In this document: in pieces, positions 1 to 62,000 of the stretch
How positions within the stretch are numbered: the first letter of the stretch is position 1
How the letters are laid out: every line of letters begins with the position of its first letter
From: Penicillus capitatus
Lineage: Eukaryota; Plantae; Chlorophyta
Direction of reading: 5' to 3'
DNA: 64,000 nucleotides
Assembly: GCA_965649825.1 (NCBI GenBank)
Contig: OZ287700.1
Coordinates: 1,302,001 to 1,366,000 of the forward strand
Translations under genes and position numbers: made by a program
The notes under the pieces: generated by a model
Told to the model about the DNA's origin: nothing
The model's input: only the letters and a program-made list of their open reading frames with translations
The model's database searches: none

Positions 1-576
1 CCCCGACGAGTAACGAGGGTCTCTGTCCTGGAAGCTGTGAAAGCGTTCGTCGTACGTGAAGCGCACGAAGTAGTCCGTGTCCGTCGGAATGCTGTCCGCG
101 TTGCAGAAGGCGACCTTCACCTTTCTGTGTCCAAACAGTCAACAGTCAAACAGCGAAGGGCGGCTGTACGCTCACACCTGTAAATCGTGCCGACCGGAAC
201 GACATCATTCTCTCCGTTGGGTTGCAGAAAAAGCTCGCGTGCGTCGAACGAAATGGCTTCCAGCGTCGGAAGCTGATCTCCGCCGAAAACGTCGTTAGCG
301 ACGCAGAACCACTGCGCGATAAACTCCTCGTTCTGACATGCATACGGAAATACGGTTGGGTAGGTTCTGGGGAAAACGAACGCTGCGAATCTCGACAACG
401 CGGCACACCCAGACGCGATTGTCGTTGCGCTGCAGACCGCCGTACTCCGCGAAGACCTCGACGCACTCTCCGACTTCAACCTGGACCACAGTACGTTCGA
501 CTGCCTCGAGTTCCGAGTCCCTTACCTCGAATGCCAATGAAGGATCGTCGAAGTCGACCAAAAACACGCGTTGCAT
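1..576 (-). CDS. 5' exons (BAH domain) of a second copy of the CMT-like methyltransferase, running off the window
   Basis: Mirror of 59053-59628 (VEVGECVEV..WVCRVVEI, FIAQWF..DARELFL, YFVRFTYD); the remainder lies outside the window. Confidence 0.8.
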
Positions 577-2073
577 TCCAACCTCGGTAATTAAAACGGT
601 CAGAACATCGATGAGCGCTCATTTCTGCAAAACGAATTGTCGCGTCATTCGACGCAAGATAATGAGCGACTGGCGGCAGATGGGTCGACAAACCCATCGC
701 GGTGCATCGCAACTCGCGCGCCACTCTGCAGTGAGCGCGCAGAGTTCAGTTAAACGGCCAGTGTCTCTGGCCGTCGATCAAAACCCGCCCGAAATGACCC
801 GTGTATTCGGCGCCGAACGGGAAACAACCGAACAACGGCGCCAGAACGCCTATCAAACACGCAGCGAAAGCTCTGTCTGACAATAAACTTTAACACACAC
901 TTCTGCACTGTGTCCGCAAGCGCCTTTCTCTTGTAATTCACACTTAGAACAAATGTACGCCTGCCTTTAGCAGCAGACCGTGCTGATGCGGTTTTTGAAC
1001 GACGAAATCCGGTGAGCGCGAACGAAAGGGGCAGAACTCGGAGGCCTGTTGCAATCCATCGCCGCGGATTCTGAGATCTTGGGTTCTTAGACCATCGCAG
1101 CAGAACGATCATGCCTTTGTGTTCTCGATGAGAGCAAAGTTGCGAGCACGATGGGTGCTAGTGGAGCCAAATCGAATCGAGTCTGGGTGATAGCGAGCCT
1201 CTCTGTATCCAACGAAGGCGCAGTCCACGATGTGATGTCGGTCACTTATTCTCGGGGTCTCTGTTCGAGCACTTGCTTGCCTTATCGTCGTCGCGGAAAT
1301 GGATGCATGCATCGATCAACCAAACTACTCGCCCTTCTTGAAGTGTGCCACAGCGATTCTCTCGAAACCCTGAATGCCCAATTAACTGCATGCACTGTCC
1401 GGGATGAAGGATTGGTTCGAGGTGAGAACGTTTGCTCAACCTCTGCGCAGGATGACCCGCGAGCGTCGACTCGGTCATCAGACCGTCGCTGTGATGCGGA
1501 CACTCACGAGAGAAGGCCGATCAGCGGTTCGACTGGTCGGTAATCGAGTTCCGCGATACAGACAGGGATTCAAGCACCTACGAGGCCTCCTCGAAGCAGC
1601 CGGCAGAAAGGTCGGACTCCCCTCGTTCCGAGGCCTCGCTCGATGCGGTCGGAGCAGGCGTCGACACCTCGACCCCAGTGGTTCGAGCTCTCTGTTAAAT
1701 TCTATGCAAGAGACGTTTTTGGTTCTGTTGCATCCTCGCGTGTCGTCGGCGGGCGCAAGGACCGACTCGATCGGTCGACTTCAACGGTCCATTCGGCCGG
1801 TGATCGATGTTCTGTATTCTCGCGGCGGTGCGACGCCGAGTCGCAGTCGACCAGAGTCACAACGACGCCACGCACCTCGCAGCCTCCACATCGACGAGCA
1901 GTCTGTCCGACGTCCGCCAGCAGATCTCTGCAGACTCGGAATACTCGGAGACGGATGGCGTCGACAATTGTGCGCCTTCCGGCGTCGACGCTGCAGATTC
2001 CGCGCGCACTCGACGATTATACCCGGCGGTCGTGCTCGGACTCAATCGTCCATTCTTTCGTGGTGCATGACTC

Positions 2074-3026
2074 ATGATGGAGTACCTCTCTGACAACGAA
2101 CTCTGTCTGATTCTGACACGCCTCGACGGGCAGAGCTACGCGCTCGCGAAGGTAAGCACTCTCCTCGGCCGGCGCTGATTCGAACGCGGCTCTCGTCGTG
2201 GACAGTCCGTCAACCGGCAGTGGTCGCGCGTGTCGCGTGCGCTAGAGGTGAGCGGCCCTTCCTTCTTCTCTCGAGCCCGCGCGTCTGCGCTCCTCCCCAG
2301 GTCCGCAAGGAGCGTTTCATGAGGCAATGGGGACTGATTCGCGTGAACGGCACCCCGAGAGGACCCACCTTCCTCGAAGTGCGACGGTCCCCTTCCTCGC
2401 ACTCGATGCGAGCTCGCTCCTGTGTGCAGACCGCCAGTCTGAACGACTTCGTCCGCCGACACGTCCTGCAGAAGGGAGATTCGCTGGCTAAGCTGGCTGT
2501 GAAGTACAGCTGCTCGGTCCTGGATCTCAAGGTCACGAACAACATCCTGACAGAGCACGCCATCATGTCCCGGAAGGAGCTGCTCGTTCGAGGTCGCGTC
2601 CCGCAGTCCCGCCCCCACGTTCCAGATCGCCGTCTGCAGTCAACTCTAGGGAGGAGATCGGAGGCCAGGTCGGCCGGATCTACTACTCCGCCGAGGCCAA
2701 GCGCGAGTACATGCTGCTGTACCCTCCCGATCACGTCTTCGAGGACGAAGACGCCTCCGCCGACGCCGCGTCGGCCTCGCGGTCGTGGCTCGGCGGCAGC
2801 ACCAGTCCGAAGGCAGAACGCGTTCGCCGGCAGCTGGTTCTGATGCTGACGCGCAGGTTCAAGATCCAGGCGCTCGTGGCCGAAGCCTACCTGGCCGTCG
2901 CCGACTGGGATCCGCTGAGGGCGATCGACCAGTACCGTGAGTTCCCCTCCGCCGCCCCGCGCCGCGAGACGCTGTGTGGTGTGGCCAGAGCAGGACGAGT
3001 ACTGGCAGGAGCACGGACAGCGGTGA
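2074..3026 (+). CDS. F-box/LysM protein (At1g55000-like architecture), left copy, multi-exon
   Basis: MMEYLSDNELCLILTRL..VNRQWSRV is F-box-like. HVLQKGDSLAKLAVKYSCSVLDLKVTNNIL is a LysM motif. GT-AG introns of about 50 bp; inferred stop TGA at 3024-3026. Confidence 0.8.
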
Positions 3027-3080
3027 TCCTCGCCGCCCCTTCTTCCTTGTCTGTTTGTGTACAACGCTCACTGTAAGACG

Positions 3081-4169
3081 TCACTGCCAGAAGTTAATCG
3101 TCCCGTCTGTCGAAGAGGTCAGCAGCGAGTTCTGTTCCGGGTGGACGGTGCAGGAGCAGACGGTGTCCTCGTGCGCCTGGAGCCGCCTCCTGACCACCGC
3201 GTCGACCATCTCCCAGAGGAAGATGCATCCGTCCTCCGACCCCGCGAAGACGTGGGCGTCCGAGCGCGTGAATCCGCACTCGATCTTGAGGCTCCTGTGG
3301 CGATGGCCGGTGTACGTGGCCAGAACGCTCCCGTCAGCCTTGTCCAGCAGGACCAGGGCATCCGACATGCAGGCGCAGAGCACGGAGGCCCCGTCCCTCG
3401 CCAGGGCAAAACCTGAACCTCCCACCTGACGCACTGAGGATCGCCCCGGCCGAGACGGACCTGTGATGGGCTCTGCGAACTGGTCCATGTAGGCGCGCGC
3501 CATCCTCAGGTCGAACCTCTTCAGCACTCCGTCGACGCTCGATGCGAAGATCTCGCACCTCGACGCCGCCACGCACGTCACGCTGTCCTGCACCGCGCAC
3601 CGTCCCTCCCGGCCAGTCGGGAGGGGACGCGACCTTGAAGCCGGTGAGCTGCTGGATGGCGGACGCGCTGCGCGATCGACAGTCCCACACGTTGGCCACC
3701 CTGTCGTAGCCGCCGCTCACCAGGACCTCCTCGTCCGCCGCGTAGACCACCGAGTTGACCGTGCTGTCGTGGCCCCGCATCCTGCGGATGGTGTTTCCGC
3801 TGGCGACGTCCCAGAGGAATATCTGACGGTCGCCGCCGCAGGTCGCGAACTTCGCGTTGTCTCCGGCGATGCAGGCGTCTCGCACCTCGTAGCCGTGCCC
3901 GGCGTACGTCTTGATCAGCAGCCCGCGGTAGGGGTTCCACAGACGCGCCGTCCGATCCTTTACGACGCCTCGCTCGACGAGGCCTGTGCGACGGTGCCTA
4001 CCTTCCCGCAGGAGATGCAGTAGGAGCCCTGGGCGTTGAACCGGACGGCCAGGACCGGTCCCTCGTGGCCCCGGAGGCCGCGCATGAGGGTGCACGGCAG
4101 CTCGGCCTGCGCCTGCGCGTCGGAGTCGTCCTGGGCGTCGTCCGCGTTCGAAGACGTTCCGAAGTCCAT
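3081..4169 (-). CDS. WDR83: WD40-repeat protein WDR83/MORG1-like, left copy
   Basis: LRGHEGPVLAVRFN..CGKDRTARLWNP..IKTYAGHGYEVRD..GHDSTVNSV..SSTDGTINFW; three GT-AG introns. Confidence 0.88.
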
Positions 4170-4187
4170 CGGACGGCGAAGGGAGGA

Positions 4188-6296
4188 TTAGAACAGGAAG
4201 TCCGATGTGACAGTCATCGCCCAGCCGAACTTTTGCAGCAGCGTGTTGGTGTAGATCTTCTCGATCGGCATCTCGTGGCGCTTGCACCAGGCGACGGAGA
4301 TGCGGGGATCGAGGTAGTTGATCTTGGACGTCCCGAGGGCGACGGTCTTCAGGCTCTCCTTGTTCTGCATCTGCACCTGGACCCTCTCCCTCTGCGCCGC
4401 CTTCTTCTCGCGGCGCTTCTGCAGAACGGCGAGCTGCTTCTGGTCCCTGGAGCTCGCTGCCCCCTTCAGATCGCCGATGGCGTCGTCGATCTCGCGGATC
4501 TCCTGCTCGAGCTGGGAGACCTTCTCCGTCAGACGCTCGATCTGGTTGCCGTGCGTCTTGGGCACCGCCCTCTGGTGGTTGCACAGGATCGCCACCTGCG
4601 CACACGGAAGTCCCGGATCTCGGCGCGCCGATCGGGTTCGCGGACCTGCTTGTTGGCCTCGTCGTAGGCCGACCGCTTGCGCTCGACCGGGAGCTGTGCG
4701 TCGAGTTCGGCCTCGAGCTGCTGCTGCAGCGTGATGGACGCGTTGTACGTGCGGAACACCTTGGCAGAGAGCCCGTCCATCAGCTCCTTCAGCTCCCTGT
4801 TCAGGTCCTGCGCGTCGAACAGGTCGAACAGCTGGTCGCCCGGCTGCTTTCCTGCACACAGAGCCCGGGTGGTCGTCGAAGAGGCGTCCATCTGTCCCCT
4901 TACGCGTCCCGTTCCTCCGACAGGTGCAGAAGCCGGCGACGTTGTTGTAGACCTGCTCGTCCACCTTGACCGTGTTCTCGTAGCGGATGGAGTCCTTTCC
5001 GAGGAAGTCGAACCTGATGCGGTTCGGCTGGATGCACTCCACGTTCTCGACCTGCAGGGAATCGCCGCCGCCGCGGGGACGGGTCCGGAGGAGCGGACCT
5101 TCAGCGTGCAGCAGCCGACCGTGTCCGCCTCGTCCTCGTCCTTCTCGTGGCCCGCCCTCAGCGCCAGGCGGTCGATGAAGTACAGCGCCGTGCCCATCTG
5201 CCTCTTCTGCGGATCCTCCGACGTCCAGTCGGCCCGATACTTCTCGCGGATGCGGTCGATGTGCTCCTTCAGCTTCCTGGCCTTCTCGTACTTGGCCATG
5301 TCGTTCTCGCTCTTAAAGGTGCTGTTCGCCGCCAGGAACACGTACTTGAAGTCCTTCGGCGATATGGGATCCTTCCAGAAGGCCAGCCAGGTCACGGCGT
5401 CGTCGTGGCGGACGGCCTTCCAGGACTGTCCGGGATATGGGTGCTCCGGGATCGGCGCGTCTGGACCTATGTTGATCGTGATGTCCCGCGGGTAGATGCG
5501 CCTCTTGATGCGCCCCATCTTCGGATGCTCGCCGCGTCCGCGGAACAGACCCGGGGGCTCCACGCGAAAGTTGCCAACCTAGACGGGCATCCTCGGGCGC
5601 GGCCGCCCTCGAAGACGTTCCGATGCCCACCTGCTCTGGCTGTCCGTCGACCAGGGCCGTCTTGTACTTCTCCTCCGCCTCCTGTTTCCTGAGGCGGATC
5701 TCCTTCTTCTCCTCCTTCGACAGGGCCTTGCTCTTCTGCTTCTCGGCCTGGTGCCACTCGTGGATGGGCCCGAAGTCGATCCTGTCGAACTCCTGGATCA
5801 TGTGATCACCGCCCAGCAGTGCCCGGAAGTCTTCCCAGAAGTTCTTGACGAAGACGGGCTTCCCGGCGTAGTCCGTGTCCAGCATGACCGCGAAGAACGT
5901 CGCGGCCTCCTCCTGCTCCGGCGTCAGATCGACAGGGCGGCCGTCGTAGAGCGGCTTCACGCCGTGGGGCTCGTACTCCGGCGGAAACATGACGCCGTTG
6001 TGCTGCAGCGTGTTCCACCTCTTCTTCACCTCTGCGGACGGGAACTCCTGGAAGGGGGTTGGGAGGGTGTCGAGGGGACTACCGGCAACGCGCTTCTTCC
6101 TGTCGGCCCCGCGCTCTTCGGAAGCCTCGCGCTTTCGCGTCCTGCCGGGGGCTCTGCGTCTGTGGGAGGAGGGGGTGGACTGGCTCGACATCGCGGTCGA
6201 GCTCTTCCGTCCGCTGTACCGCGCACTCAGAGACAGCTCGTCCTCGGACTCGTCGTCGCTGAGCGACATATCCGCCGAGCTCGAAGCACTCGACAT
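4188..6296 (-). CDS. TOP1: DNA topoisomerase I (type IB), left copy
   Basis: WxTLQHNGVMFPPEY, EPPGLFRGRGEHPKMG, YFIDRLALRAGHEKD..ADTVGCCTL, FDFLGKDSIRY, AKVFRTYNAS, and catalytic GTSKINYLDPR; introns about 50 bp. Confidence 0.97.
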
Positions 6297-6663
6297 ACTC
6301 GCAGGGATTCTGCTGCCACCGAGTACGGACAGGCAAGGCAGTTGTGAGTGGACGCGCAAACGATTGGCTGAATTCGCATCATTACAGGGACAGCGATACT
6401 GACAGCGACAGCTGCCGCATATAGGTAAGGAGGCTGTTTATGACTTATTGTATGTACGTTGAATGTGAAAAGGCAGGATTACAGCATAGGCGAACAGTCT
6501 CTGGAAAGATCTTCTCGAGTTGACTTAACTTGCTTCAGAAATCATCGAGACGGGACTGAGCAACAGATGTTCCAAGATATCCACGCCAAGATCTACTAAG
6601 CCATCCACCCTCTTGGTTGTCTGAAGAAGATCCTTCGTCCATACTAAAACACAAGACACTGCA

Positions 6664-7832
6664 TTAAGTGCCAGAGTCGACAGGGTGTTGCACGATTGCA
6701 GTTCCAACAAAGTGGGAACATTGCCCATCGTTGGACTTGCTGAATCGCTTGACATCAGAGGACACTGTCTTCCAATCTTCACTCGAAAATCTTGCATCAA
6801 CTGTTATGCACGAGACCTCTGTTAGATTGCGCGAATTGGATGGGTCACACCTGTTCTGTAGCTGATTTCTCTTCATCTTCCGATCTCTCGATATCAAGTT
6901 CGACAGAACTGCTCTCTCCCATGTCTCTCTTAGTCGTCCACCTTCTGTGAAAGGTATAGAACACAAGTGGGACAGTATACCAGGCCACCACGATGTCCAC
7001 AGTGTAATGCTTGCGTGAGGCAATGATAAGCAGCGACAAAATGGCTCCCATGATCCATGAGAGTATCTTGAGAATAAAAACGCTCCCATACGTTGTGTAT
7101 GTTAAGATCCCCACTAAGATAAACGTTGTGTGTGAAGAAAAGATCAGATCTCCGCAGCCGTAAGCAGCTTGTTGCACTGGGTCGTAGACAATATGTCCAT
7201 ACCAATGCTTTGGCCAGTCCAATGTCGCCGTGTTCTGCCCAGTACGGCAGTGATAGTTCGGAGACGGCAACTGCGTCGATAAGAAGGAGATGATGCGCAG
7301 CGCCTGACACGCAGCCAGAACGGTAAGCAGGCGTGATGCGAGGACAACTGTATAGAATCGTTTTCGGCTCAGTACGAATGGCGAAAGGATCCAGAGAACG
7401 AATGAAATGAAGAGCGTGTAGAAGATACTCTCACTGACCCACGCATTCTCCTCTCCCAATTCCTGCGGCACGTAATCTCAAAAATTTGGGAGAAGGAATA
7501 GGAAGAGTTGACATGCGTGAGCTCGAATCCAAGGTCTCCCAATGGCCGAGACTGAGGCTCGTGCAGGCGCTTTTCCAGTTGGGTGAAGATTCCATGGATG
7601 TATTGAAAGACGATGCCGAAGAGAATCGTCTTCCAGCGATACTTGAGCATGGGAAACTAAAGAAAGGAGAAAGAGCTGAACCAGTTTGTCCGTCTCGGAG
7701 ACCTACTTCCACTACAAACTCCATACGGATACGCCTCCAGATATCTACAAGAAAAGCAGAACAACGCGTCGACGACGCTGAGTCTTCAGGAGTGAAACGT
7801 GCATCGGGCTCGACGCGGATGATACTACTCAT
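6664..7832 (-). CDS. Inositol phosphorylceramide synthase / sphingomyelin-synthase family
   Basis: WKTILFGIVFQYIHG..DLGF, TQLPSPNYHCR, GCGDLIFSSH, IIASRKHYTVD motifs; two 50-bp GT-AG introns. The last exon and stop are uncertain (6845 or 6664). Confidence 0.88.
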
Positions 7833-8402
7833 GGTGGTCTCGACGATGAAATATGTATGTTCGTTCGTCGACTTTCGTTTTAATGGACCATAAATTGACG
7901 GAGACGGTTGGAAGTATTACAGTAGCCGCTCGTGCTGTCAGGCAGTAAGGTCACTTTTTCAGTGATGACGTGACAAAGGCGTTTCGGTTGATGAACTGAA
8001 TCTGTCTTGAGGGCGCAATGAATGGTTGGGAGTGAGCTCATCGAGATCGGTTAGAAAGTAGGGGTCGTCGGATGACGATAGGCGTATTGACTGATCACTA
8101 TTAAGGACGGCTGGGGCATAGATCGCGAGCATGTAAAACTAGAATTGCTCATCCATCCGCTGTTTTGAGCCGTACCCACAATTGTGGATACCGTCCGCTT
8201 AAGATTCGTATCGGGGGGCCTGTCGCAGAACGAAAACGAGTGGCACGACAAAAATCGTCAAAGTTCGCCTACCAAAGATCGACCGTTGTCCGTCTTGCCT
8301 TCAAAAAGTGCCAGTCGGCAGTTTTCGCAACGTAAGCGGCGGAGTGTATTCCTCACAGAAAGAGTATTGATTGAGACCCCCTGTTTTCATAGTTCGAGCA
8401 GC

Positions 8403-9698
8403 ATGGGCTCCGCCATGTCTCGTCCTGAACCACCACGCTCTGAACGTGTGTGTACCACCATTCTGAAATACTCGACTATCGGTCTCTGTGGACTGCAATT
8501 TGTTGTCCGCCGTCTACGTCGACCCGGTAAGCGAACGGCTGTCTTGCGTTCCCCGCGCCCCTCGACAATGAAACTCGTCGGGGTGAATCCGATTGCGCTT
8601 GACTGTGACGTGGTTACCTTATTCCCGAATTCTTCGCGAGAGATTAAGGAACTGCAAGTGCTGGAATCAAAGATGTGCCCCACATTTTTCAACTCGTTGG
8701 ATGCGCTTCTGAACTTGAGCGTCCTCGAACTGAGGGGTGTCGAGGTCGATGATAGAGTTGATCTTTCGTTTCTGAAGAGATTACACAATTTAAGAACTCT
8801 TGTTATTGATGACTGCTTCGAGTTGACGAGTGGCGGCTTGGATATTCTATTACAGTTGCCTCAGCTCGACCGACTGGAACTCGGAATTGAGGCACTGGCG
8901 CAACTCAGTTACGAATTCTGCGCTTCATGTTCGTTTGAACTATCGCTCATTCTTTACGGTCCTCGTTGTTTGAACGATTTTCTAAAACTGATGGCGATTC
9001 AGAATCTCGTGAGTATTTGTTTTATCGATTTTTGGACACTTGTGTATCCAGTGTGGATGAGGGAAATGCCAAAACTTAGATGTTTGTCTTTCAAGAACGG
9101 TATCGTGAAGAATGGTCAAGACAACGACACTGCTGTTTTTCCACCGTCCTTAAAACGCGTCTCCTGCGTTTCTTGTTCTATGGATCGCCAAATCCTAGAA
9201 GCGACGCTTCGCAGTGCAGATCGACTAACCGAATTGGAGCTGGATCTTCCTTTCTTTCCGGAAGACATTGCGATTTCGCACTGTACGAATTTGAATGTTT
9301 TGAGTATTTCAGCAAAGGAATGCGACGGGGAGATGCTTGAACAACTGACGTCGAATAAAGCTCTTCGTGTCATCGAACTCTCTGGGTGTTGCAACTTATC
9401 GCCGCAGCATTTTGTTGCTCTTGACCACTGTCACAGTCTAGTCAAGATATCAATCTCGTGCTCATATCTCAGTCCGGGAGTTTGCGAACAGTTAGCCGCA
9501 CTTAAAGGACTTCAGTACCTCGAGTTTCATTATTGCCTCGGAATTCACCTGAGCGAATTCCGTAATACACGAGGACTCCGATGCCTCATTCTTAACAAAT
9601 GTCACAAGTTACAGGGAGACGTAAACGCATTTCTTACATCACTTCCCGTTCAAGGACTCGATTCGTTCTACTTTGAAGAGATCTCGCCTGGTTCTTAA
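8403..9698 (+). CDS. Intronless LRR protein, paralogue A (N-terminus MGSAMS)
   Basis: Long ORF with LxxLxL repeats (LSVLELRG, LRTLVIDDC, LRVIELSGC). Aligns by eye along its full length with 51174-52451 and 11500-12783. Confidence 0.85.
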   Translation: MGSAMSRPEPPRSERVCTTILKYSTIGLCGLQFVVRRLRRPGKRTAVLRSPRPSTMKLVGVNPIALDCDVVTLFPNSSREIKELQVLESKMCPTFFNSLDALLNLSVLELRGVEVDDRVDLSFLKRLHNLRTLVIDDCFELTSGGLDILLQLPQLDRLELGIEALAQLSYEFCASCSFELSLILYGPRCLNDFLKLMAIQNLVSICFIDFWTLVYPVWMREMPKLRCLSFKNGIVKNGQDNDTAVFPPSLKRVSCVSCSMDRQILEATLRSADRLTELELDLPFFPEDIAISHCTNLNVLSISAKECDGEMLEQLTSNKALRVIELSGCCNLSPQHFVALDHCHSLVKISISCSYLSPGVCEQLAALKGLQYLEFHYCLGIHLSEFRNTRGLRCLILNKCHKLQGDVNAFLTSLPVQGLDSFYFEEISPGS

Positions 9699-15016: not shown

Positions 15017-15032
15017 CCGTGGCTGTCTACAT

Positions 15033-17398: not shown

Positions 17399-17418
17399 AC
17401 TCTCCGACACCTGTATGT

Positions 17419-47075: not shown

Positions 47076-47756
47076 CTAATCGAGGTTCCCGTTCTCGCCA
47101 AATGCTTTTCATTATTTCGTACGCATTGTCGTGAAAAGACAGGACAAGGAAACGAACGCCATGTATGATAAGCACAACAGAGCACTGATGGCCGACAGTT
47201 GTCTGTCGGTATTCACGCGATAGCAACTCAGTATCAAAGTCATACGGACCTGTCTTGAACACTCGGCGCATTTTAACCTGTTGTTGGACTGTCAGCGACG
47301 CTGCCAGAAACGACGTATTTCCTGCGCGCGCCTGGAGAATCATCAACGGGACGTTGACGGTCTTCGACTGCTTGTTGCTCTGACGGTTACTCGACGGCAC
47401 AGTCTCTCCGAAGGAAAGTGACGGCATCCAATGCCAGTGCTCTTTCGGCGAAAGAAATGATACCGATGATAGAGACGCGTGCTCGCAGAGGAACGCCCAT
47501 CGAAAACAGTCAACCTCCAGCAGCAACCATTCATCCTCGGGAAGCATACAACCATCAATACCAAATCGTCGCAGATAAGAATGATGCACAGAGTACAGAA
47601 CCGGCGAAACCATCGCTGCGAGGATGTAAGTCCACCACCAGTAAATACGCAACCGGCGATGGTTGACGGAAAAGGGGGCCAAGTGACCGTTTGATGAGGC
47701 ATACGAATTCTCCGAGATTTTGTCCTCCGTTGATTCGTCTGAGCTATTCGTCCATC

Positions 47757-52451: not shown

Positions 52452-53331
52452 GCAGCTGGAACTGCGCAACACATTCGCCTCAGTGCGTTGTGTGCCATAC
52501 GCGATCCCGCGACTTACATTGCGAGAACGGAAAATGAAACGGGTCGTGGACGAGAGGGCCGGCCAAGCCTCACTTAGTCGACCTTCGACGAACAGTTTCC
52601 GTGGTTAACGCTGTTTAGAGGTTAGGGATTGTCAGAGAGGTCCGACACAAATGTTATTCTCGAAAAAGATTGAGCTTGAAGTCAGTTCGTCGATTCGGAA
52701 AAACGTTTGCGATGCTGTGAATGCAGGGACTTGTATGCGCAGTAGATGCACATTACATGAGGTTGTAGTGCCCCCGCATGACATCGAGAATTGCTAACCG
52801 ATTGAGATGCATCACAAGGGTTGACGCGTATCGACTTAAAATGCCGTTCTGATAGTCAGGTGATGGATCCTTTTTGTCGGCGATGACTCGAAGAAGGAGT
52901 GCATGGCGTAATAACACGCAAAGGCTAACTTACATTCGAAAACATAACCGTCCGACACGGTTCGATGTTGCCTGCCATGTCTGACACCGCGTTGACAAAG
53001 AAACGTCACATCACTCACCTGCTGTACAGAAGAAGCAAAATCAGCAACCAATCTCTCAAAGTCAGCCACACGTGTCTCGATGATTACTGAAGGGAGTTAT
53101 GTCTACTCGAGAAGATCTTTCCAGAGACTGTTCGCCTATGCTGTAATCCTGCTTTTTCACATTCAACGTACATACAATAAGAAGCCATAAACAGCCTCCT
53201 TACCTATATGCGGCAGCTGTCGCTGTCAGCATCGCTGTCCCTGTAATGATGCGAATTCGGCCAATCGTTTGCGCGTGCGCTCACAACTGCCTTGCCTGTC
53301 CGTACTCGGTGGCAGCAGAATCCCTGCGAGC

Positions 53332-55440
53332 ATGTCGAGTGCTTCGAGTTCGGCGGATATGTCGCTCAGCGACGACGAGTCCGAGGACGAGCTGTCTCTG
53401 AGTGCGCGGTACAGCGGACGGAAGAGCTCGACCGCGATGTCGAGCCAGTCCACCCCCTCCTCCCAGAGACGCAGAGCCCCCGCCAGGACGCGAAAGCGCG
53501 AGGCGTCCGAAGAGCGCGGGGCCGACAGGAAGAAGCGCGTTGCCGGTAGTCCCCTCGACACCCTCCCAACCCCCTTCCAGGAGTTCCCGTCCGCAGAGGT
53601 GAAGAAGAGGTGGCACACGCTGCAGCACAACGGCGTCATGTTTCCGCCGGAGTACGAGCCCCACGGCGTGAAGCCGCTCTACGACGGCCGCCCTGTCGAT
53701 CTGACGCCGGAGCAGGAGGAGGCCGCGACGTTCTTCGCAGTCATGCTGGACACGGACTACGCCGGGAAGCCGGTCTTCGTCAAGAACTTCTGGGAAGACT
53801 TCCGGGCACTGCTGGGCGGTGATCACGTGATCCAGGAGTTCGACAGGATCGACTTCGGACCCATCCACGAGTGGCACCAGGCCGAGAAGCAGAAGAGCAA
53901 GGCCCTGTCGAAGGAGGAAAAGAAGGCGATCCGCCTCAGTAAGCAGGAGGCGGAGGAGAAGTACAAGACGGCCCTGGTCGACGGACAGCCAGAGCAGGTG
54001 GGCATCGGAACGTCTTCGAGGGCGGCCGCGCCCGAGGCTACCCGTCTAGGTCGGCAACTTTCGCGTGGAGCCCCCGGGTCTGTTCCGCGGACGCGGCGAG
54101 CATCCGAAGATGGGGCGCATCAAGAGGCGCATCTACCCGCGGGACATCACGATCAACATAGGTCCAGACGCGCCGATCCCGGAGCACCCATATCCCGGAC
54201 AGTCCTGGAAGGCCGTCCGCCACGACGACGCCGTGACCTGGCTTGCGTTCTGGAAGGATCCCATATCGCCGAAGGACTTCAAGTACGTGTTCCTGGCGGC
54301 GAACAGCACCTTCAAGAGCGAGAACGACATGGCCAAGTACGAGAAGGCCAGGAAGCTGAAGGAGCACATCGACCGCATCCGCGAGAAGTATCGGGCCGAC
54401 TGGACGTCGGAGGATCCGCAGAAGAGGCAGATGGGCACGGCGCTGTACTTCATCGACCGCCTGGCGCTGAGGGCGGGCCACGAGAAGGACGAGGACGAGG
54501 CGGACACGGTCGGCTGCTGCACGCTCAAGGTCCGCTCCCCCGGACCCGTCCCCGCGGTGGCGGCGATTCCCTGCAGGTCGAGAACGTGGAGTGCATCCAG
54601 CCGAACCGCATCAGGTTCGACTTCCTCGGAAAGGACTCCATCCGCTACGAGAACACGGTCAAGGTGGACGAGCAGGTCTACAACAACGTCGCCGGCTTCT
54701 GCACCTGTCGGAGGAACGGGACGCGTAAGGGGACAGATGGACGCCTCTCCGACGACCACCCGGGCTCTGTGTGCAGGAAAGCAGCCGGGCGACCAGCTGT
54801 TCGACCTGTTCGACGCGCAGGACCTGAACAGGGAGCTGAAGGAGCTGATGGACGGGCTCTCTGCCAAGGTGTTCCGCACGTACAACGCGTCCATCACGCT
54901 GCAGCAGCAGCTAGAGGCCGAACTCGACGCACAGCTTCCGGTCGAGCGCAAGCGGTCGGCCTACGACGAGGCCAACAAGCAGGTCCGCGAACCCGATCGG
55001 CGCGCCAAGATCCGGGACTTCCGTGTGCGCAGGTGGCGATCCTGTGCAACCACCAGAGGGCGGTGCCCAAGACGCACGACAACCAGATCGAGCGCCTGAC
55101 GGAGAAGGTCTCCCATCTCGAGCAGGAGATCCGCGAGATCGACGACGCCATCGGCGATCTGAAGGGGGCAGCGAGCTCCAGGGACCAGAAGCAGCTCGCC
55201 GTTCTGCAGAAGCGCCGCGAGAAGAAGGCGGCGCAGAGGGAGAGGGTCCAGGTGCAGATGCAGAACAAGGAGAGCCTGAAGACCGTCGCCCTCGGGACGT
55301 CCAAGATCAACTACCTCGATCCCCGCATCTCCGTCGCCTGGTGCAAGCGCCACGAGATGCCGATCGAGAAGATCTACACCAACACGCTGCTGCAGAAGTT
55401 CGGCTGGGCGATGACTGTCACATCGGACTTCCTGTTCTAA
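53332..55440 (+). CDS. TOP1: DNA topoisomerase I (type IB), right copy
   Basis: Same motifs as the left copy, including GTSKINYLDPR; intact splice sites. Confidence 0.97.
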   Translation: MSSASSSADMSLSDDESEDELSLSARYSGRKSSTAMSSQSTPSSQRRRAPARTRKREASEERGADRKKRVAGSPLDTLPTPFQEFPSAEVKKRWHTLQHNGVMFPPEYEPHGVKPLYDGRPVDLTPEQEEAATFFAVMLDTDYAGKPVFVKNFWEDFRALLGGDHVIQEFDRIDFGPIHEWHQAEKQKSKALSKEEKKAIRLSKQEAEEKYKTALVDGQPEQVGIGTSSRAAAPEATRLGRQLSRGAPGSVPRTRRASEDGAHQEAHLPAGHHDQHRSRRADPGAPISRTVLEGRPPRRRRDLACVLEGSHIAEGLQVRVPGGEQHLQERERHGQVREGQEAEGAHRPHPREVSGRLDVGGSAEEADGHGAVLHRPPGAEGGPREGRGRGGHGRLLHAQGPLPRTRPRGGGDSLQVENVECIQPNRIRFDFLGKDSIRYENTVKVDEQVYNNVAGFCTCRRNGTRKGTDGRLSDDHPGSVCRKAAGRPAVRPVRRAGPEQGAEGADGRALCQGVPHVQRVHHAAAAARGRTRRTASGRAQAVGLRRGQQAGPRTRSARQDPGLPCAQVAILCNHQRAVPKTHDNQIERLTEKVSHLEQEIREIDDAIGDLKGAASSRDQKQLAVLQKRREKKAAQRERVQVQMQNKESLKTVALGTSKINYLDPRISVAWCKRHEMPIEKIYTNTLLQKFGWAMTVTSDFLF

Positions 55441-55458
55441 TTCTCCCTTCGCCGTCCG

Positions 55459-56547
55459 ATGGACTTCGGAACGTCTTCGAACGCGGACGACGCCCAGGAC
55501 GACTCCGACGCGCAGGCGCAGGCCGAGCTGCCGTGCACCCTCATGCGCGGCCTCCGGGGCCACGAGGGACCGGTCCTGGCCGTCCGTTTCAACGCCCAGG
55601 GCTCCTACTGCATCTCCTGCGGGAAGGTAGGCACCGTCGCACAGGCCTCGTCGAGCGAGGCGTCGTAAAGGATCGGACGGCGCGTCTGTGGAACCCCTAC
55701 CGCGGGCTGCTGATCAAGACGTACGCCGGGCACGGCTACGAGGTGCGAGACGCCTGCATCGCCGGAGACAACGCGAAGTTCGCGACCTGCGGCGCCGACC
55801 GCCAGATATTCCTCTGGGACGTCGCCAGCGGAAACACCGTCCGCAGGATGCGGGGCCACGACAGCACGGTCAACTCGGTGGTCTACGCGGCGGACGAGGA
55901 GGTCCTGGTGAGCGGAGGCTACGACAGGGTGGCCAACGTGTGGGACTGTCGGTCGCGCAGCGCGTCCGCCATCCAGCAGCTCACCGGATTCAAGGTCGCG
56001 TCCCCTCCCGACTGGCCGGGAGGGACGGTGCGCGGTGCAGGACAGCGTGACGTGCGTGGCGGCGTCGAGGTGCGAGATATTCGCATCGAGCGTCGACGGA
56101 GTGCTGAAGAGGTTCGACCTGAGGATGGCGCGCGCCTACATGGACCAGTTCGCAGAGCCCATCACAGGTCCGTCTCGGCCGGGGTGATCCTCAGTGCGTC
56201 AGGTGGGAGGTTCAGGTTTTGCCCTGGCGAGGGACGGGGCCTCCGTGCTCTGCGCCTGCATGTCGGATGCCCTGGTCCTGCTGGACAAGGCTGACGGGAG
56301 CGTTCTGGCCACGTACACCGGCCACCGCCACAGGAGCCTCAAGATCGAGTGCGGATTCACGCGCTCGGACGCCCACGTCTTCGCGGGGTCGGAGGACGGA
56401 TGCATCTTCCTCTGGGAGATGGTCGACGCGGTGGTCAGGAGGCAGCTCCAGGCGCACGAGGACACCGTCTGCTCCTGCACCGTCCACCCGGAACAGAACT
56501 CGCTGCTGACCTCTTCGACAGACGGGACGATTAACTTCTGGCAGTGA
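55459..56547 (+). CDS. WDR83: WD40-repeat protein WDR83/MORG1-like, right copy
   Basis: Mirror of 3081-4169; intact. Confidence 0.88.
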
Positions 56548-56601
56548 CGTCTTACAGTGAGCGTTGTACACAAACAGACAAGGAAGAAGGGGCGGCGAGG
56601 A

Positions 56602-57554
56602 TCACCGCTGTCCGTGCTCCTGCCAGTACTCGTCCTGCTCTGGCCACACCACACAGCGTCGCGCGGCGCGGGGCGACGGAGGGGAACTCACGGTACTGGT
56701 CGATCGCCCTCAGCGGATCCCAGTCGGCGACGGCCAGGTAGGCTTCGGCCACGAGCGCCTGGATCTTGAACCTGCGCGTCAGCATCAGAACCAGCTGCCG
56801 GCGGACGCGTTCTGCCTTCGGACTGGTGCTGCCGCCGAGCCACGACCGCGAGGCCGACGCGGCGTCGGCGGAGGCGTCTTCGTCCTCGAAGACGTGATCG
56901 GGAGGGTACAGCAGCATGTACTCGCGCTTGGCCTCGGCGGAGTAGTAGATCCGGCCGACCTGGCCTCCGATCTCCTCCCTAGAGTTGACTGCAGACGGCG
57001 ATCTGGAACGTGGGGGCGGGACTGCGGGACGCGACCTCGAACGAGCAGCTCCTTCCGGGACATGATGGCGTGCTCTGTCAGGATGTTGTTCGTGACCTTG
57101 AGATCCAGGACCGAGCAGCTGTACTTCACAGCCAGCTTAGCCAGCGAATCTCCCTTCTGCAGGACGTGTCGGCGGACGAAGTCGTTCAGACTGGCGGTCT
57201 GCACACAGGAGCGAGCTCGTATCGAGTGCGAGGAAGGGGACCGTCGCACTTCGAGGAAGGTGGGTCCTCTCGGGGTGCCGTTCACGCGAATCAGTCCCCA
57301 CTGCCTCATGAAACGCTCCTTGCGGACCTGGGGAGGAGCGCAGACGCGCGGGCTCGAGAGAGGAAGGAAGGGCCGCTCACCTCTAGCGCACGCGACACGC
57401 GCGACCACTGCCGGTTGACGGACTGTCCACGACGAGAGCCGCGTTCGAATCAGCGCCGGCCGAGGAGAGTGCTTACCTTCGCGAGCGCGTAGCTCTGCCC
57501 GTCGAGGCGTGTCAGAATCAGACAGAGTTCGTTGTCAGAGAGGTACTCCATCAT
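56602..57554 (-). CDS. F-box/LysM protein, right copy
   Basis: Mirror of 2074-3026; intact. Confidence 0.8.
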
Positions 57555-59052
57555 GAGTCATGCACCACGAAAGAATGGACGACTGAGTCCGAGCACGACC
57601 GCCGGGTATAATCGTCGAGTGCGCGCGGAATCTGCAGCGTCGACGCCGGAAGGCGCACAACTGTCGACGCCATCCGTCTCCGAGCTCTTCCGTGTCTGCA
57701 GAGATCTGCTTGCGGACGTCGGACAGACTGCTCGTCGATGTGGAGGCTGCGAGGTGCGTGGCGTCGTTGCGACTCTGGTCGACTGCGACTCGGCGTCGCA
57801 CCGCCGCGAGAATACAGAACATCGATCACCGGCCGAATGGACCGTTGAAGTCGACCGATCGAGCCGGTCCTTGCGCCCTCCGACGACACGCGAGGATGCA
57901 ACAGAACCATAAACGTCTCTTGCATAGAATTTAACAGAGAGCTCGAACCATTGGGGTCGAGGTGTCGACGCCTGCTCCGACCGCATCGAGCGAGGCCTCG
58001 GAACGAGGGGAGTCCGACCTTTCTGCCGGCTGCTTCGAGGAGGCCTCGTAGGTGCTTGAATCCCTGTCTGTATCGCGGAACTCGATTACCGACCAGTCGA
58101 ACCGCTGATCGGCCTTCTCTCGTGAGTGTCCGCATCACAGCGACGGTCTGATGACCGAGTCGACGCTCGCGGGTCATCCTGCGCAGAGGTTGAGCAAACG
58201 TTCTCACCTCGAACCAATCCTTCATCCCGGACAGTGCATGCAGTTAATTGGGCATTCAGGGTTTCGAGAGAATCGCTGTGGCACACTTCAAGAAGGGCGA
58301 GTAGTTTGGTTGATCGATGCATGCATCCATTTCCGCGACGACGATAAGGCAAGCAAGTGCTCGAACAGAGACCCCGAGAATAAGTGACCGACATCACATC
58401 GTGGACTGCGCCTTCGTTGGATACAGAGAGGCTCGCTATCACCCAGACTCGATTCGATTTGGCTCCACTAGCACCCATCGTGCTCGCAACTTTGCTCTCA
58501 TCGAGAACACAAAGGCATGATCGTTCTGCTGCGATGGTCTAAGAACCCAAGATCTCAGAATCCGCGGCGATGGATTGCAACAGGCCTCCGAGTTCTGCCC
58601 CTTTCGTTCGCGCTCACCGGATTTCGTCGTTCAAAAACCGCATCAGCACGGTCTGCTGCTAAAGGCAGGCGTACATTTGTTCTAAGTGTGAATTACAAGA
58701 GAAAGGCGCTTGCGGACACAGTGCAGAAGTGTGTGTTAAAGTTTATTGTCAGACAGAGCTTTCGCTGCGTGTTTGATAGGCGTTCTGGCGCCGTTGTTCG
58801 GTTGTTTCCCGTTCGGCGCCGAATACACGGGTCATTTCGGGCGGGTTTTGATCGACGGCCAGAGACACTGGCCGTTTAACTGAACTCTGCGCGCTCACTG
58901 CAGAGTGGCGCGCGAGTTGCGATGCACCGCGATGGGTTTGTCGACCCATCTGCCGCCAGTCGCTCATTATCTTGCGTCGAATGACGCGACAATTCGTTTT
59001 GCAGAAATGAGCGCTCATCGATGTTCTGACCGTTTTAATTACCGAGGTTGGA

Positions 59053-62000
59053 ATGCAACGCGTGTTTTTGGTCGACTTCGACGATCCTTCATTGGCATTC
59101 GAGGTAAGGGACTCGGAACTCGAGGCAGTCGAACGTACTGTGGTCCAGGTTGAAGTCGGAGAGTGCGTCGAGGTCTTCGCGGAGTACGGCGGTCTGCAGC
59201 GCAACGACAATCGCGTCTGGGTGTGCCGCGTTGTCGAGATTCGCAGCGTTCGTTTTCCCCAGAACCTACCCAACCGTATTTCCGTATGCATGTCAGAACG
59301 AGGAGTTTATCGCGCAGTGGTTCTGCGTCGCTAACGACGTTTTCGGCGGAGATCAGCTTCCGACGCTGGAAGCCATTTCGTTCGACGCACGCGAGCTTTT
59401 TCTGCAACCCAACGGAGAGAATGATGTCGTTCCGGTCGGCACGATTTACAGGTGTGAGCGTACAGCCGCCCTTCGCTGTTTGACTGTTGACTGTTTGGAC
59501 ACAGAAAGGTGAAGGTCGCCTTCTGCAACGCGGACAGCATTCCGACGGACACGGACTACTTCGTGCGCTTCACGTACGACGAACGCTTTCACAGCTTCCA
59601 GGACAGAGACCCTCGTTACTCGTCGGGGCCGAAGTCGGTGCGTTCAAGGCCTGCTCGCGCGGCCCTCGGAATGAGACCGCGCATGTGTGATGCGCAGGTC
59701 TACAATGTCTTGGAGTTGTACTGCGGATGTGGCGGATTCGGATTCATCTGCGGGGAGTCGGATGGGATCCGAATGGTCCCGACGCATGCCGTCGACTTCC
59801 ATCAGGACAGCTTGGACACGTACCAGCTGAATCACCCACAGACGAAGGTACTGCGTCCGCGAGAAAACCATGACTTATGCCGTCCCCCCAGACGCACGCC
59901 AGAAAGGTGGACGACTTCCTGGCCAACTGCAGGGGGTTTCACGGTCTGTGCGCGACGTACGGAGCCTACCTGCCGAGGGAAGAGCCCGTGGCAGAGTCGT
60001 CCGATGCGAAGATACTCGATCTCACGGGGCTGGAATCTGGGAAGCCCTTGGTCGGCCTCAGATCGCCGAATGGGCCGCCGGCGGAAGAATACGTTCCTCT
60101 CGCCGATGCACTGGAGGAGGGGCGCATCACGGTAGGAGACGTGAGGGGTTACCTCCGCAGAAAGAAGCAGGAGGGCGTCCTCCCCGTCCCGGGAGAGGTC
60201 GATGTCATCGTCGGAGGGCCCCCGTGCCAAGGGGTAAGTGTGGCCGTGGGCAGACTGGGCTGTCATGCTCAGTCGCTGTTCTGGTACCCAGCTGAGCGGA
60301 AAGAACAGGAATGTGGACACGTGGGACATCTTCTCCTGCCAGAGAAACTCCGAGATCAAGAACTTCGTCCAGGCCGTGGAGTTCTTCAAGCCCAGATTCG
60401 TCGTGCTGGAGAACGTCGCTGTGAGACCAGCCCGCAGTGCGACTCGTTGAGCCAAGCTCTCTGGTGCAGGAATCGATGGCGAGAGAAGAAGGCCTGTACA
60501 TGCGCTTCGCGGCGCTCAACCTGATCAAGCTGGGATACCAGCTGAGAATGGGCATCCTCTCTGCCGCCTGCTACGGGGCTCCGCAGGTACGGTGCGATCG
60601 TCCAGGCACACGGGTGGTCGGATCCTGCATTGGCAGATGCGGTTTCGGGCGTTCTTGATCGCGGCCCTCGGCGGCGTGGAACCACTGCCTCCCTTCCCGC
60701 ACCCGACGGTGTGTCCTCCGGAGAACGAGTTCCGGACCCGGGCGAACAACCTGTCGAAGATGGCAAAGGTGAGACCGGCGGTGTCGGCGTTGCCGGTGTG
60801 TTAGCCCTGCTGCTTGCAGCCATGTGTCGTGGATGTCGATGAAAGAAGGAAGGGATTGCTGCCTCCGGCGACCTTGCTCTGGGACGCACTGGAGGACCTG
60901 CCGGAGGTCACCAGCTTTGACCTGACCGAGTCTGTGCCGTACGGGTGAGGTGCCTTCGCCGCGGAATGGATCTGACGTCTTCCTCAGAATGCCGGCGCAG
61001 AGACCCTACCAGTGTTACCTCAGGATGAACGAGCACGACAGCGAGGGCTGGAGGGGCAAGGCGCAGCTCTTCCTGGATGTGCTTTACAGAGACGTCCTCG
61101 CCAGAATCGGCAACCTACGGGCGATATGCGATGCGCAGCACACGCCGAATGGGGCGAACGTAAGACGACGCCCCTCCGTTCTTCCCTCGTCTGATGTTTG
61201 TGGTCAGTTGGCGCTTGGAGAGTACTTCCAGCCATTCGGAGCGCTGAAACAGGAGGTCGGAACATCGTCCACGAGGACCTCCGCGTCGACGGTCTGCTCT
61301 TCAGGTCTGGAACCTCTACGTCAGAGGGAAGTCGCCCGAGGAGATGGCCGCGCTCAACAAGGTCAGAGATCAGGTCGTCCAGGGGGCAGGACAGACGGTA
61401 CTCGAACGCGCATTGCACCGAGGGCGACGGTCCTGCTGCAGATCAAGGCGCTGATGGACGCCTTCAGCACGGAGTACCAAGGCCCCTGCATCAACCACCG
61501 CTGCTCTCCCATCTCCGTCGGGGCGTGGCTGAGAATTCAGATGATTTCGAAGGACGGAGGCGATTTCACGTCCCTTCCCGGCGTCGTGAAGCACGAGGAG
61601 TGTAAGGTCCCGTTCCACCGGATTCCGTCCGGACGGAGCTCTGCCCTCAGACGTCTGCGTGGGACACACGCACGGGTTCAGAAGAAGCACGCGCAACGGA
61701 AAGGAAAGGATCTTGGCGCGGTGTGAGGGATACACCGACGGACAGAACGGGGCGATCTCGCGCCTGAGCGATCGCCGATGCGCTGCGCAGACCTTCATGC
61801 TGCCGACGAAGGAGGTCATGATCACGAGGTGATCGCCATCAGTCACGTCATCCAGTCCGACGGCGCTTCGCTGTCAGGTGGATGGTCAACCAAGTCAATC
61901 GACGGCACGCGAATCCGCGGAGGACGTTCGGCAGGTTGAAGAGAAACGACATCTTCGGCACACTGCTGACGGAAGTGTCGCCTTCATGCGGATACGCCGT

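Follow-up and report, generated by a model that had tools for sequence, protein, structure and literature searches.

The stretch of DNA that we analysed, 64,000 nucleotides in all and referred to here as the window, holds a large, gene-bearing nuclear palindrome whose arms have very probably been homogenised by recurrent arm-to-arm conversion since before the split of two lineages. Self-alignment pairs positions 1-6551 with 53074-59628 in reverse complement, the two being 98.87% identical, with 70 mismatches and 2 indels (1 nt near 1943/57685 and 3 nt near 6442/53183) in a 6555-column alignment, and similarity is lost abruptly past 6551/53074, where 51 differences fall within the following 150 nt. 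An inverted repeat of this kind cannot be of chance origin, and it lies where the original prediction had placed it. The same prediction was right about a unique interior of 46.5 kb, since the only long self-similarity inside the spacer (6552-53073; 46,522 bp, GC ~0.45-0.52) is that of diverged leucine-rich repeat (LRR) paralogues and tandem arrays. The inner boundaries fall in intergenic DNA, ~255 bp upstream of TOP1. Spliceosomal introns, a eukaryotic TOP1 and an LTR-type retroelement mean that the locus is nuclear, and its host, judged from sequence, is a bryopsidalean green alga from the Caulerpa side of the order: in a PWD tree the window groups beside Caulerpa with support of 100/100, and the closest named TOP1 to that of the window comes from Ostreobium.

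The left arm (1-6551) stops at position 1 because the window starts there, and the arms were expected to reach past that edge, as indeed they do. In the sibling assembly L010, positions 2919-12298 match window positions 64000-54620, part of the arm included, at 98.5% over 9385 nt, and the portion lying to the left of the window's start (L010 2919-7290) mirrors 59629-64000, the outer continuation of the right arm, so that the arms must be at least 10.9 kb long. In addition, a related lineage (~84% identical in nucleotide sequence) shares this palindrome, which lies mid-contig in a 1.68-Mb contig; there the spacer is 30 kb, and the arms, 97.0% identical and no shorter than 23,050 nt, cover the stretch equivalent to 59629-64000. 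The inner boundaries of the relative agree with those of the window to within ~20 nt. All of these arm sizes are lower bounds, the stretches compared ending before any unique outer flank in every assembly. The sequence L009, representing the source assembly, is 100% identical to window positions 33995-56847. It is of course reasonable to ask whether a haplotype copy or a fold-back chimera was simply misjoined in inverted orientation, which had been put forward as the main alternative, and the 1-2% divergence of the arms is within the range of heterozygosity, while in one assembly the locus lies close to where a contig ends. However, the same inner boundaries recur in the sibling assembly and in a lineage ~16% diverged, fold-back chimeras do not yield unique spacers of 30-46 kb, and an arm-specific transposon insertion, together with arm-specific variants, marks two physically distinct copies. 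Because three assemblies (the window's own, the sibling L010 and that of the relative) carry the structure, an assembly artefact can be excluded as very unlikely, to the point of being scarcely credible.

The arms demonstrably evolve in concert, and arm-to-arm recombination happens. Four-way site patterns, comparing two arms in each of two genomes, comprise 1546 sites that are genome-specific in both arms, 7 that are arm-specific, joining like arms of the two genomes, and 0 that are crossed, joining unlike arms, and the arms are 98.2% identical inside each genome as against 84% between genomes. For TOP1, dS is 0.039 and 0.012 when arm is compared with arm and 0.20 between the lineages, while spacer genes compared between the lineages have dS values of 0.27-0.44 and dN/dS of 0.04-0.35. 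One tract, at 1-1677, was converted recently, being 100% identical to 57952-59628; once the outer sequence of the sibling is added the identical run reaches 2182 bp (P ~7e-14), and across the equivalent stretch the arms of the relative have 22 differences. The three LRR paralogues of the spacer are one-to-one orthologues across the lineages (81, 65 and 83% amino acid identity) and only 37-51% identical among themselves, and since they remain distinct, homogenisation must be limited to the arms. Long, near-identical inverted arms, a unique spacer and concerted evolution with common boundaries are thus all found here, and the locus is another case of a known kind, the large gene-converting palindrome. 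At a finer scale, 9 sites, besides the transposon, separate the left arm of the window from that of the sibling assembly. At sites 3443 and 5576 the sibling carries the right-arm allele, unlike the allele of the relative, which needs either arm-to-arm exchange or recurrent mutation, and at 2266 and 3303 it is the left arm of the window that stands apart, a private mutation being the simplest explanation; such fine detail in the arm variants may reflect assembly-level mixing of reads between arms.

How might such a structure have come about and persisted? We think it very probable that an inverted segmental duplication arose before the two lineages split (dS ~0.2-0.4), and that recurrent gene conversion between the arms has held them at 97-99% identity in each genome ever since. 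This conversion appears to favour GC, and would thereby have raised GC to very high levels at intron and synonymous sites in the inner arms. The gene copies of both arms stay functional yet redundant, so that a transposon can knock out one of them. The same pairing of the arms, if resolved as a crossover, would invert the spacer.

The arms carry recognisable genes, and for two of these the original prediction of an intact copy in each arm has stood up well. The right copy of TOP1 (eukaryotic topoisomerase I; 53332-55440, plus strand), established from Pfam, a gene model and tblastn with Ostreobium, Bryopsis and Chlamydomonas TOP1 queries, has exons at 53332-53997, 54050-54529, 54577-54724, 54777-54982 and 55033-55440, separated by introns of 52, 47, 52 and 50 nt, and the left copy (4188-6296, minus strand) is intact under the same five-exon model. 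Spliced in this way, TOP1 gives a stop-free product of 635 aa in both arms of the window and both arms of the relative, with the N-terminal DNA-binding fragment, the catalytic core and the C-terminal domain in a single frame (Pfam Topoisom_I_N, Topoisom_I and Topo_C_assoc; E 2e-45 to 2e-57). Between the two copies in the window, 16 codons differ synonymously and 8 nonsynonymously (dS 0.039, dN 0.005). In the sibling assembly only, a 5266-bp Ty3/gypsy-type retroelement (L010 12299-17564) interrupts the left TOP1 copy, and the corresponding target site in exon 3, an AAGT at 5005-5008 of the window, is empty. The second gene is a WD40-repeat ORF, identified from Pfam WD40 and the ORF lists, of 423 aa at 55023-56294 (plus strand) and, as an equally long mirror ORF, at 3334-4605 (minus strand); its best match among natural proteins in the PDB is WDR83 (9s2f, E 3e-35). 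Of the F-box/LysM gene that had been expected in each arm, only the LysM part stands: ORFs of equal length in the right arm (56552-57408, minus strand) and, as their mirror, in the left (2220-3076, plus strand) have a weak LysM match (E 0.0025), and a Pfam profile search of these ORFs detected no F-box. Further out, at 59874-62539 on the plus strand (an approximate extent), is a putative CMT-like C5 DNA methyltransferase gene of several exons, whose 5' end may, as originally predicted, lie in both arms. It is marked by three weak, collinear PF00145 matches at ~60.2-62.3 kb, at profile positions 58-92, 123-153 and 284-320, none of which reaches the gathering score (E 8e-4, 0.011 and 0.0018) and all of which lie beyond the arm portion that has its mirror within the window. 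In the PDB, this gene is best matched by 4fsx (E 5e-6 over 33 residues), which we take to be the maize chromomethylase ZMET2. Neither a Chromo nor a BAH domain was found at E up to 1 in plus-strand ORF pieces from 58.5-63.0 kb, a search that intron-split domains could escape.

Base composition sets the inner arms apart. GC3 reaches 0.906 in TOP1, and intron GC 0.71, as against GC3 of 0.46-0.59 in spacer genes and a moderate 0.55-0.69 in the genes of the outer arm. The spacer, at ~48% GC, appears to represent the local background, with the inner arms as the compositional outliers. Young variants confined to a single arm run the other way (151 GC-to-AT versus 81 AT-to-GC), and this bias corresponds to an equilibrium GC of 0.46, compared with an arm GC of 0.61. 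The enrichment fits GC-biased gene conversion, which we infer, and gene-specific codon usage could explain part of it. In the arms of the relative, mismatch between arms and GC are negatively correlated per kb (rho -0.57, p 0.004), a relationship confounded by the higher GC and stronger constraint of coding sequence.

The coding sequences of the spacer are those of ordinary genes, held under purifying selection. First inside the left boundary is a PAP2_C-domain gene (6845-7471, minus strand; Pfam E 1e-19), with a dN/dS of 0.04 against the relative. The LRR genes follow: gene 1 (8184-9698, plus strand) and gene 3 (51174-52472, minus strand), which lie near the left and right inner boundaries respectively, are inverted paralogues of ~50-54% amino acid identity, and gene 2 (11500-12783, plus strand) has 37-41% identity to both. 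The spacer is collinear with the 30-kb spacer of the relative save for one 16.2-kb segment (19132-35378), which the relative lacks there and within which lie tandem repeat arrays (21748-23447; periods 47, 82/182, 42-43 and 71), an SSIII-like starch synthase with CBM53/CBM25 modules and a GT5 catalytic domain (27714-30186, plus strand), an ORF with the helical domain of an XRN 5'-3' exoribonuclease (30981-31634, minus strand; Pfam) and a TPR_12 repeat ORF found by domain match (32803-33240, minus strand). Beyond it are a 769-aa LRR_6 (RNI-like) protein (35725-38034, plus strand; dN/dS 0.06 against the relative), a protein kinase domain ORF that matches as one exon of a larger gene (39630-40013, plus strand), a phosphoglucan water dikinase in a single 1026-aa ORF without a CBM20 domain (43995-47075, minus strand; dN/dS 0.07) and, again from its domain match, a patatin-like phospholipase (47720-49183, plus strand).

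Does this spacer invert? Arm-to-arm recombination is the precondition for inversion and, since its resolution as a crossover inverts the spacer, occasional inversions are to be expected as a passive by-product that needs no regulated switch; we therefore regard spacer inversion as a plausible, predicted consequence of the recombination. A stronger version has both orientations present in the population, or in the nuclei of one thallus, and re-created by arm crossovers, which we consider quite possible, if somewhat less probable than its opposite. The recombination it needs is demonstrably active, given the site patterns and the 2182-bp identical run; recurrent re-inversion accompanies a yeast inverted repeat that is homogenised per species (PMC9731477); and the human Y palindrome P6 inverts, though rarely (PMC3723533). 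Only 11,961 bp separate the window from the end of its contig, a point in or close to where the right arm should end, which is weakly in keeping with graph ambiguity there. Against this, a second orientation was not seen, the three assemblies are collinear, over a compared stretch that ends before any unique outer flank, and the few shared arm-specific variants, of which 2 lie in the outer arm, join left arm to left arm, with 0 crossed. Such passive flipping extends the palindrome explanation and does not contradict it. A regulated switch, in which expression of one or other of two gene sets depends on orientation, as in methylotrophic yeasts, is another matter. It shares the geometry of inverted repeats around a segment of tens of kb, but mating-type-like genes were found neither in the spacer nor at its ends, the inner boundaries are intergenic and ~255 bp upstream of TOP1, no neighbouring silencing element was seen, and in place of short dedicated repeats there are arms that run to tens of kb and carry housekeeping genes. 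The spacer genes being metabolic, LRR, kinase and patatin genes, regulated switching is unsupported, and we hold it to be highly improbable.

The original prediction had also raised a sex-linked or supergene-type block. No mating-type-like genes were found among the Pfam matches in ~50 ORF pieces (metabolic, LRR, kinase, patatin, TPR and XRN), and a six-frame search for RWP-RK and homeobox motifs returned none, though algal sex genes of another type could escape it; this suggestion too is left without support. A related idea is that the types represented by the window and the relative are ancient mating-type or sex-linked haplotypes of one species, with the palindrome in a non-recombining block. 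Indeed, the two types are discrete, each is seen twice, with protein differences of 0.1-0.2% within and ~6% between them, they come from different samples, and the other two contigs that bear them are oddly alike in size (702,701 and 703,994 bp); sex chromosomes of other taxa, moreover, typically carry large palindromes. However, divergence is even (dS 0.2-0.4) over the whole ~80 kb under comparison, all of it palindrome sequence, and no flank of lower divergence turned up there, which is the pattern expected from two sister species; the searches returned no gene connected with sex or mating, and we consider the idea unlikely. Its fuller form, with ancient sex or mating haplotypes of one siphonous alga, the palindrome within a non-recombining sex-determining block and a spacer that flips, is slightly less likely again.

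The preferred reading, a conversion-homogenised palindrome, has good precedents. Large palindromes of this type are best known from the sex chromosomes of animals and some plants, and from one yeast locus, and their location on sex or non-recombining chromosomes is typical but not obligatory. The plastid large inverted repeat, whose gene-bearing copies are kept identical through copy correction and whose flip-flop recombination gives two isomers, is a familiar relative of the theme; here, in contrast, the locus is nuclear and the arms are not identical. In primates, palindromes have near-identical arms maintained by gene conversion that is GC-biased and occurs in multi-kb tracts, with concerted evolution between species and rare inversions (PMC3723533, PMC8981503); for P6 of the human Y, for example, 146 conversion events compare with 3 inversions (PMC3723533). 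The algal locus resembles those of the human Y (P1-P8) and X in its gene-bearing inverted arms, unique spacer and arm-to-arm conversion, and matches them in site patterns, in its 2.2-kb identical tract and in GC enrichment. It differs in that primate arms are >99.9% identical and carry testis-expressed families, whereas the algal arms are 97-99% identical and carry housekeeping genes, and in that the host is a green alga in which a link to a sex chromosome is not known. On chromosome XIV of S. cerevisiae, both orientations of a flip/flop region have been observed, with re-inversion shown on SNP trees (Salzberg et al. 2022, PMC9731477). There, as here, a gene-bearing segment of tens of kb lies between long-conserved inverted repeats of gene pairs homogenised per species, and our site patterns likewise show inverted repeats homogenised inside each lineage; the yeast repeats are 4 kb long and the algal arms at least 11-23 kb, known here from spacer and arm sequence alone. 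In Ogataea polymorpha and Komagataella, short inverted repeats beside the MAT genes bracket an invertible segment of ~19 kb or more, and starvation-induced inversion moves the MAT locus under centromeric repression (PMC5720833). The likeness is one of geometry only, neither MAT-like genes nor signs of regulation nor a silencing neighbour having been found at the algal locus.

What, then, does this locus offer? In the literature that we searched, we found no description of a palindrome in an algal nuclear genome that is kept alike by conversion between its arms. Since this one is conserved in two lineages, conversion, GC bias and boundary stability become measurable against the spacer and the LRR control. 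Within a few kb it presents an extreme compositional contrast (GC3 0.91 versus ~0.5), and the retroelement in one TOP1 copy of one assembly displays the redundancy of duplicates in action. Without inversions, it would be an ordinary, if neat, segmental duplication; if inversions occur, it would act as a natural suppressor of recombination in a coenocytic alga; and were the sex-haplotype reading true, it would be the equivalent, in a green alga, of the palindromes on sex chromosomes, and GC-biased conversion would be preserving its duplicated housekeeping genes.

The inverted repeat described in the original prediction is real and lies exactly where it was placed: window 1-6551 aligns with the reverse complement of 53074-59628 at 98.87% identity, with 70 mismatches and two small indels over 6555 alignment columns, and similarity drops sharply just inside 6551/53074. 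The outermost 1677 nt of these arms are 100% identical, and a difference rate of about 1.3% applies from position 1678 inward. The arms also continue past the window, as can be seen in a sibling assembly that we reached through P0122, a phosphoglucan water dikinase (PWD) homologue 100% identical to the window's own and located in ENA metagenome assembly ERZ25074695, ctg340500_39x_l (1,169,807 bp). Here the sequence to the left of the window (2919-7290 of L010, the fetched left-arm stretch) is the mirror of window 64000-59629, so the arms in this organism are at least 10.9 kb long and all of 53074-64000 is arm. Arm lengths throughout are lower bounds, with every fetched locus ending short of the unique outer flanks. 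The right end of ctg340500 falls 11,961 bp past window 64000, about 22.9 kb from the right arm's inner boundary, nearly the same distance as the lower bound on arm length in a relative (23 kb), and the assembly may have broken at, or within, the outer part of the repeat.

That relative was found through a second PWD match, P0001 (93% amino acid identity), on ERZ26696514 ctg303812_167.69x_l (1.68 Mb), of which 80.7 kb was walked. The two loci are collinear, with 73-88% nucleotide identity over aligned blocks, and the inner repeat boundaries of the two lineages agree to about 20 nt. The relative's inverted arms span at least 23,050 nt, a bound set by the sequence fetched, at 97.0% identity, and their outermost kilobase still shows an arm difference of just 0.6%. 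Its spacer is 30 kb, as against 46,522 bp in the window (6552-53073), and the difference is a 16.2-kb segment, window 19132-35378, that is missing from the relative. The main alternative considered at the outset was a haplotype or assembly artefact, but the same structure in three assemblies and two lineages, once deep within a megabase contig, makes this very unlikely. A further 1.8-kb repeat (~86% identity) sits outside the left end of the relative's mapped arm (record positions 618,030-619,807 of ERZ26696514 ctg303812) and has copies within both arms (626,989-628,747 and 691,549-693,325), so the main palindrome is not the region's only layer of duplication.

Which organisms are these? The 1026-aa ORF of the spacer (43995-47075, minus strand) is an intronless PWD gene, recorded as the 950-aa P0122 with the gene caller having begun at an internal Met. 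In the PWD tree the window groups with an uncharacterised relative; Caulerpa lentillifera joins them next (support 100/100), followed by Bryopsis, while the nearest named topoisomerase (TOP1) to the window's is that of Ostreobium; judged by its genes, the host is a member of the Bryopsidales. These affinities rejected the idea that the sequence might come from a low-GC outlier region of Mamiellophyceae such as Micromonas or Ostreococcus. At JGI, the closest metagenome homologues reach just 46-64% identity for PWD and TOP1. A more distant relative's locus, L002 (75% PWD identity), has only PWD in common with the window and is thus uninformative on the age of the palindrome. According to precomputed Pfam annotation, the PWDs of the window, its relatives and Caulerpa are without the N-terminal CBM20 starch-binding domain, which nearly all other listed PWD homologues have.

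The genes carried in the arms were predicted to be intact, and for TOP1 this holds. TOP1 queries from Ostreobium, Bryopsis and Chlamydomonas (tblastn) let us model the gene in five exons separated by GT-AG introns of 52, 47, 52 and 50 nt (53998-54049, 54530-54576, 54725-54776 and 54983-55032 in the right arm, mirrored in the left), the second being set with guidance from a 5-nt indel in the relative. On this model an uninterrupted product of 635 aa is encoded in all four genomic copies, that is, both arms in both lineages. The window's two copies are separated by 16 synonymous and 8 nonsynonymous codon differences (dN/dS ~0.14), and both are predicted to be functional. An apparent nonsense mutation in the left copy (stop at 5313-5315) was rejected as an artefact of reading one frame across the short introns, which the long 'TOP1 ORF' crosses in the wrong frame. 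Prokaryote-style gene calling likewise ignores these introns and has placed a chimeric 693-aa 'protein' in public collections (P0125 and the gene call on L009, another stretch of the sibling assembly). The WD40 ORFs have the same length in both arms, and WDR83 is their best natural PDB match. The proposed F-box/LysM gene fared less evenly: LysM-containing ORFs of equal length occur in the two arms, but no F-box was detected in them. For the predicted chromomethylase there are weak PF00145 matches (profile 58-92, 123-153 and 284-320), collinear on the plus strand at about 60.2-62.3 kb and so beyond 59628, and the best PDB match of this region is 4fsx, which we take to be maize chromomethylase ZMET2; with signals this weak and no chromodomain or BAH domain found in the region, the chromomethylase identity is only a lead.

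How have the arms stayed so alike? A four-way alignment covering some 10.9 kb of both arms from both lineages has 1546 sites at which the arms agree within each genome and differ between genomes, whereas same-arm links across genomes number seven, five of them in unique sequence just past the boundary, and opposite-arm links number zero. The arms are 98.2% identical inside each genome and 84% identical between genomes, and TOP1 dS between arms is 0.039 in the window and 0.012 in the relative, compared with 0.20 between lineages (0.27-0.44 for spacer genes). Independent duplications with the same boundaries are implausible, and the arms must have undergone repeated homogenisation after the lineages split. 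A trace of recent arm-to-arm activity is visible in the window organism as a 2182-bp run without any arm difference (P ~7e-14 at the mean difference rate), over which the relative's arms have 22 differing sites. Long internal repeats in the spacer are limited to tandem arrays (21.7-23.4 kb) and three diverged LRR paralogues (8184-9698 and 11500-12783 on the plus strand, 51174-52472 on the minus); the latter are one-to-one orthologues across lineages (81, 65 and 83% amino acid identity) yet only 37-51% identical to one another, so homogenisation is confined to the arms. These LRR genes are fast-evolving (dN/dS 0.24-0.35), and the first and last stand in mirror orientation, each adjoining an inner boundary, at ~50-54% amino acid identity, which suggests that the pair may survive from an older palindrome that was once wider and in which the inner part escaped conversion.

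Composition adds a further angle. The spacer is no special low-GC island, its GC of 0.45-0.52 being like that of the outer arms and of other sequence from these algae; the outliers are the innermost 5-10 kb of each arm, at 0.60-0.65. GC3 is 0.906 in TOP1, 0.55-0.69 in outer-arm genes and 0.46-0.59 in spacer genes, and the TOP1 introns have a GC of 0.71. Single-arm variants, polarised by the other three sequences, comprise 151 GC-to-AT and 81 AT-to-GC changes, implying a mutational equilibrium GC of 0.46, near the spacer and far under the arms' 0.61. Per-kb mismatch falls with GC along the relative's 23-kb arms (rho -0.57, p 0.004), a correlation confounded by coding constraint. GC-biased gene conversion acts in primate palindromes (PMC3723533, PMC8981503), with an outcome that the enrichment here resembles, and we infer that it may be the source of the arms' composition.

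Comparison with the sibling assembly catches the left arm in a polymorphic state. Its L009 stretch is 100% identical to window 33995-56847, and no substitutions occur in the spacer and right arm over 24 kb, whereas L010 equals window 1-5008 and 5005-7806 but for nine substitutions, every one within the left arm. L010 also carries, at 12299-17564, a 5266-bp Ty3/gypsy-type retroelement lodged in the third exon of the left-arm TOP1 and absent from the window, with one 1476-aa gag-protease-RT-RNaseH-integrase ORF, the target-site duplication AAGT (window 5005-5008 being the empty site) and no clear LTRs detected. One TOP1 copy would seem to be dispensable, because the element interrupts it, and element and substitutions together indicate that the window comes from the same organism but represents a different assembly or haplotype. 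Five changes occur in the element-bearing copy alone, and each of them replaces a G or C with an A or T. At four of the nine sites the sibling assembly has the window's right-arm allele; sites 3443 and 5576 require arm-to-arm exchange or recurrent mutation, and at 2266 and 3303 the simplest explanation is a mutation private to the left arm of the window.

Besides PWD and the LRR genes, the spacer holds a PAP2_C gene, a 769-aa RNI-type LRR protein, a kinase exon and a patatin-like phospholipase, and the window-only segment (19132-35378) adds an SSIII-like starch synthase with CBM53/CBM25 modules, an XRN helical-domain ORF and a TPR_12 ORF. Within this segment, a cluster of tandem arrays (21748-23447) has periods of 47, 82/182, 42-43 and 71 nt, the 71-nt array running to 8.5 copies at 97% identity. 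tRNA and Rfam scans over the window gave no matches. Purifying selection (dN/dS 0.04-0.35) acts on the spacer genes for which the relative provided a comparison, and on this ground we rejected a centromere-like reading, with a central core between inverted repeats; a giant transposon or virus was rejected too, since the arms hold intron-containing housekeeping genes of green-algal affinity. The suggestion of a sex-linked or supergene block found no support: no RWP-RK or homeobox motif was found in the spacer, nothing marks a mating-type or sex locus, and such a role is unsupported.

Two sequence types have each been met twice, with PWD differing by 0.1-0.2% within a type versus ~6% between types. 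They could represent two sister species or else long-standing haplotypes within a single species, and we favour the former, since divergence is uniform over all 80 kb compared. The second window-type PWD (99.8% identical) and second relative-type PWD (99.9%), P0121 and P0123, lie on ENA contigs of 702,701 and 703,994 bp, oddly alike given the 16-kb indel between types, an observation that bears on the same question.

Does the spacer flip? Its orientation is definable only relative to unique outer flanks, and a segregating inversion polymorphism is conceivable, although we would lean slightly against it. For a regulated switch of the Ogataea mating-type kind (PMC5720833) there is no support beyond geometry, the sole likeness to the palindrome here. 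The mechanism shown is gene conversion between the arms of a conserved nuclear palindrome, one for which our literature search found no algal nuclear example. Such conversion requires pairing of the inverted arms, and when the paired intermediate is resolved by crossover instead, the spacer is inverted. Human palindrome P6 has 146 conversions versus 3 inversions (PMC3723533), and in the flip/flop region of S. cerevisiae chromosome XIV, where repeats are homogenised within species much as the arms are within lineages here, re-inversion is recurrent (PMC9731477). Given these cases, occasional inversion of the spacer would be a reasonable expectation in these algae.
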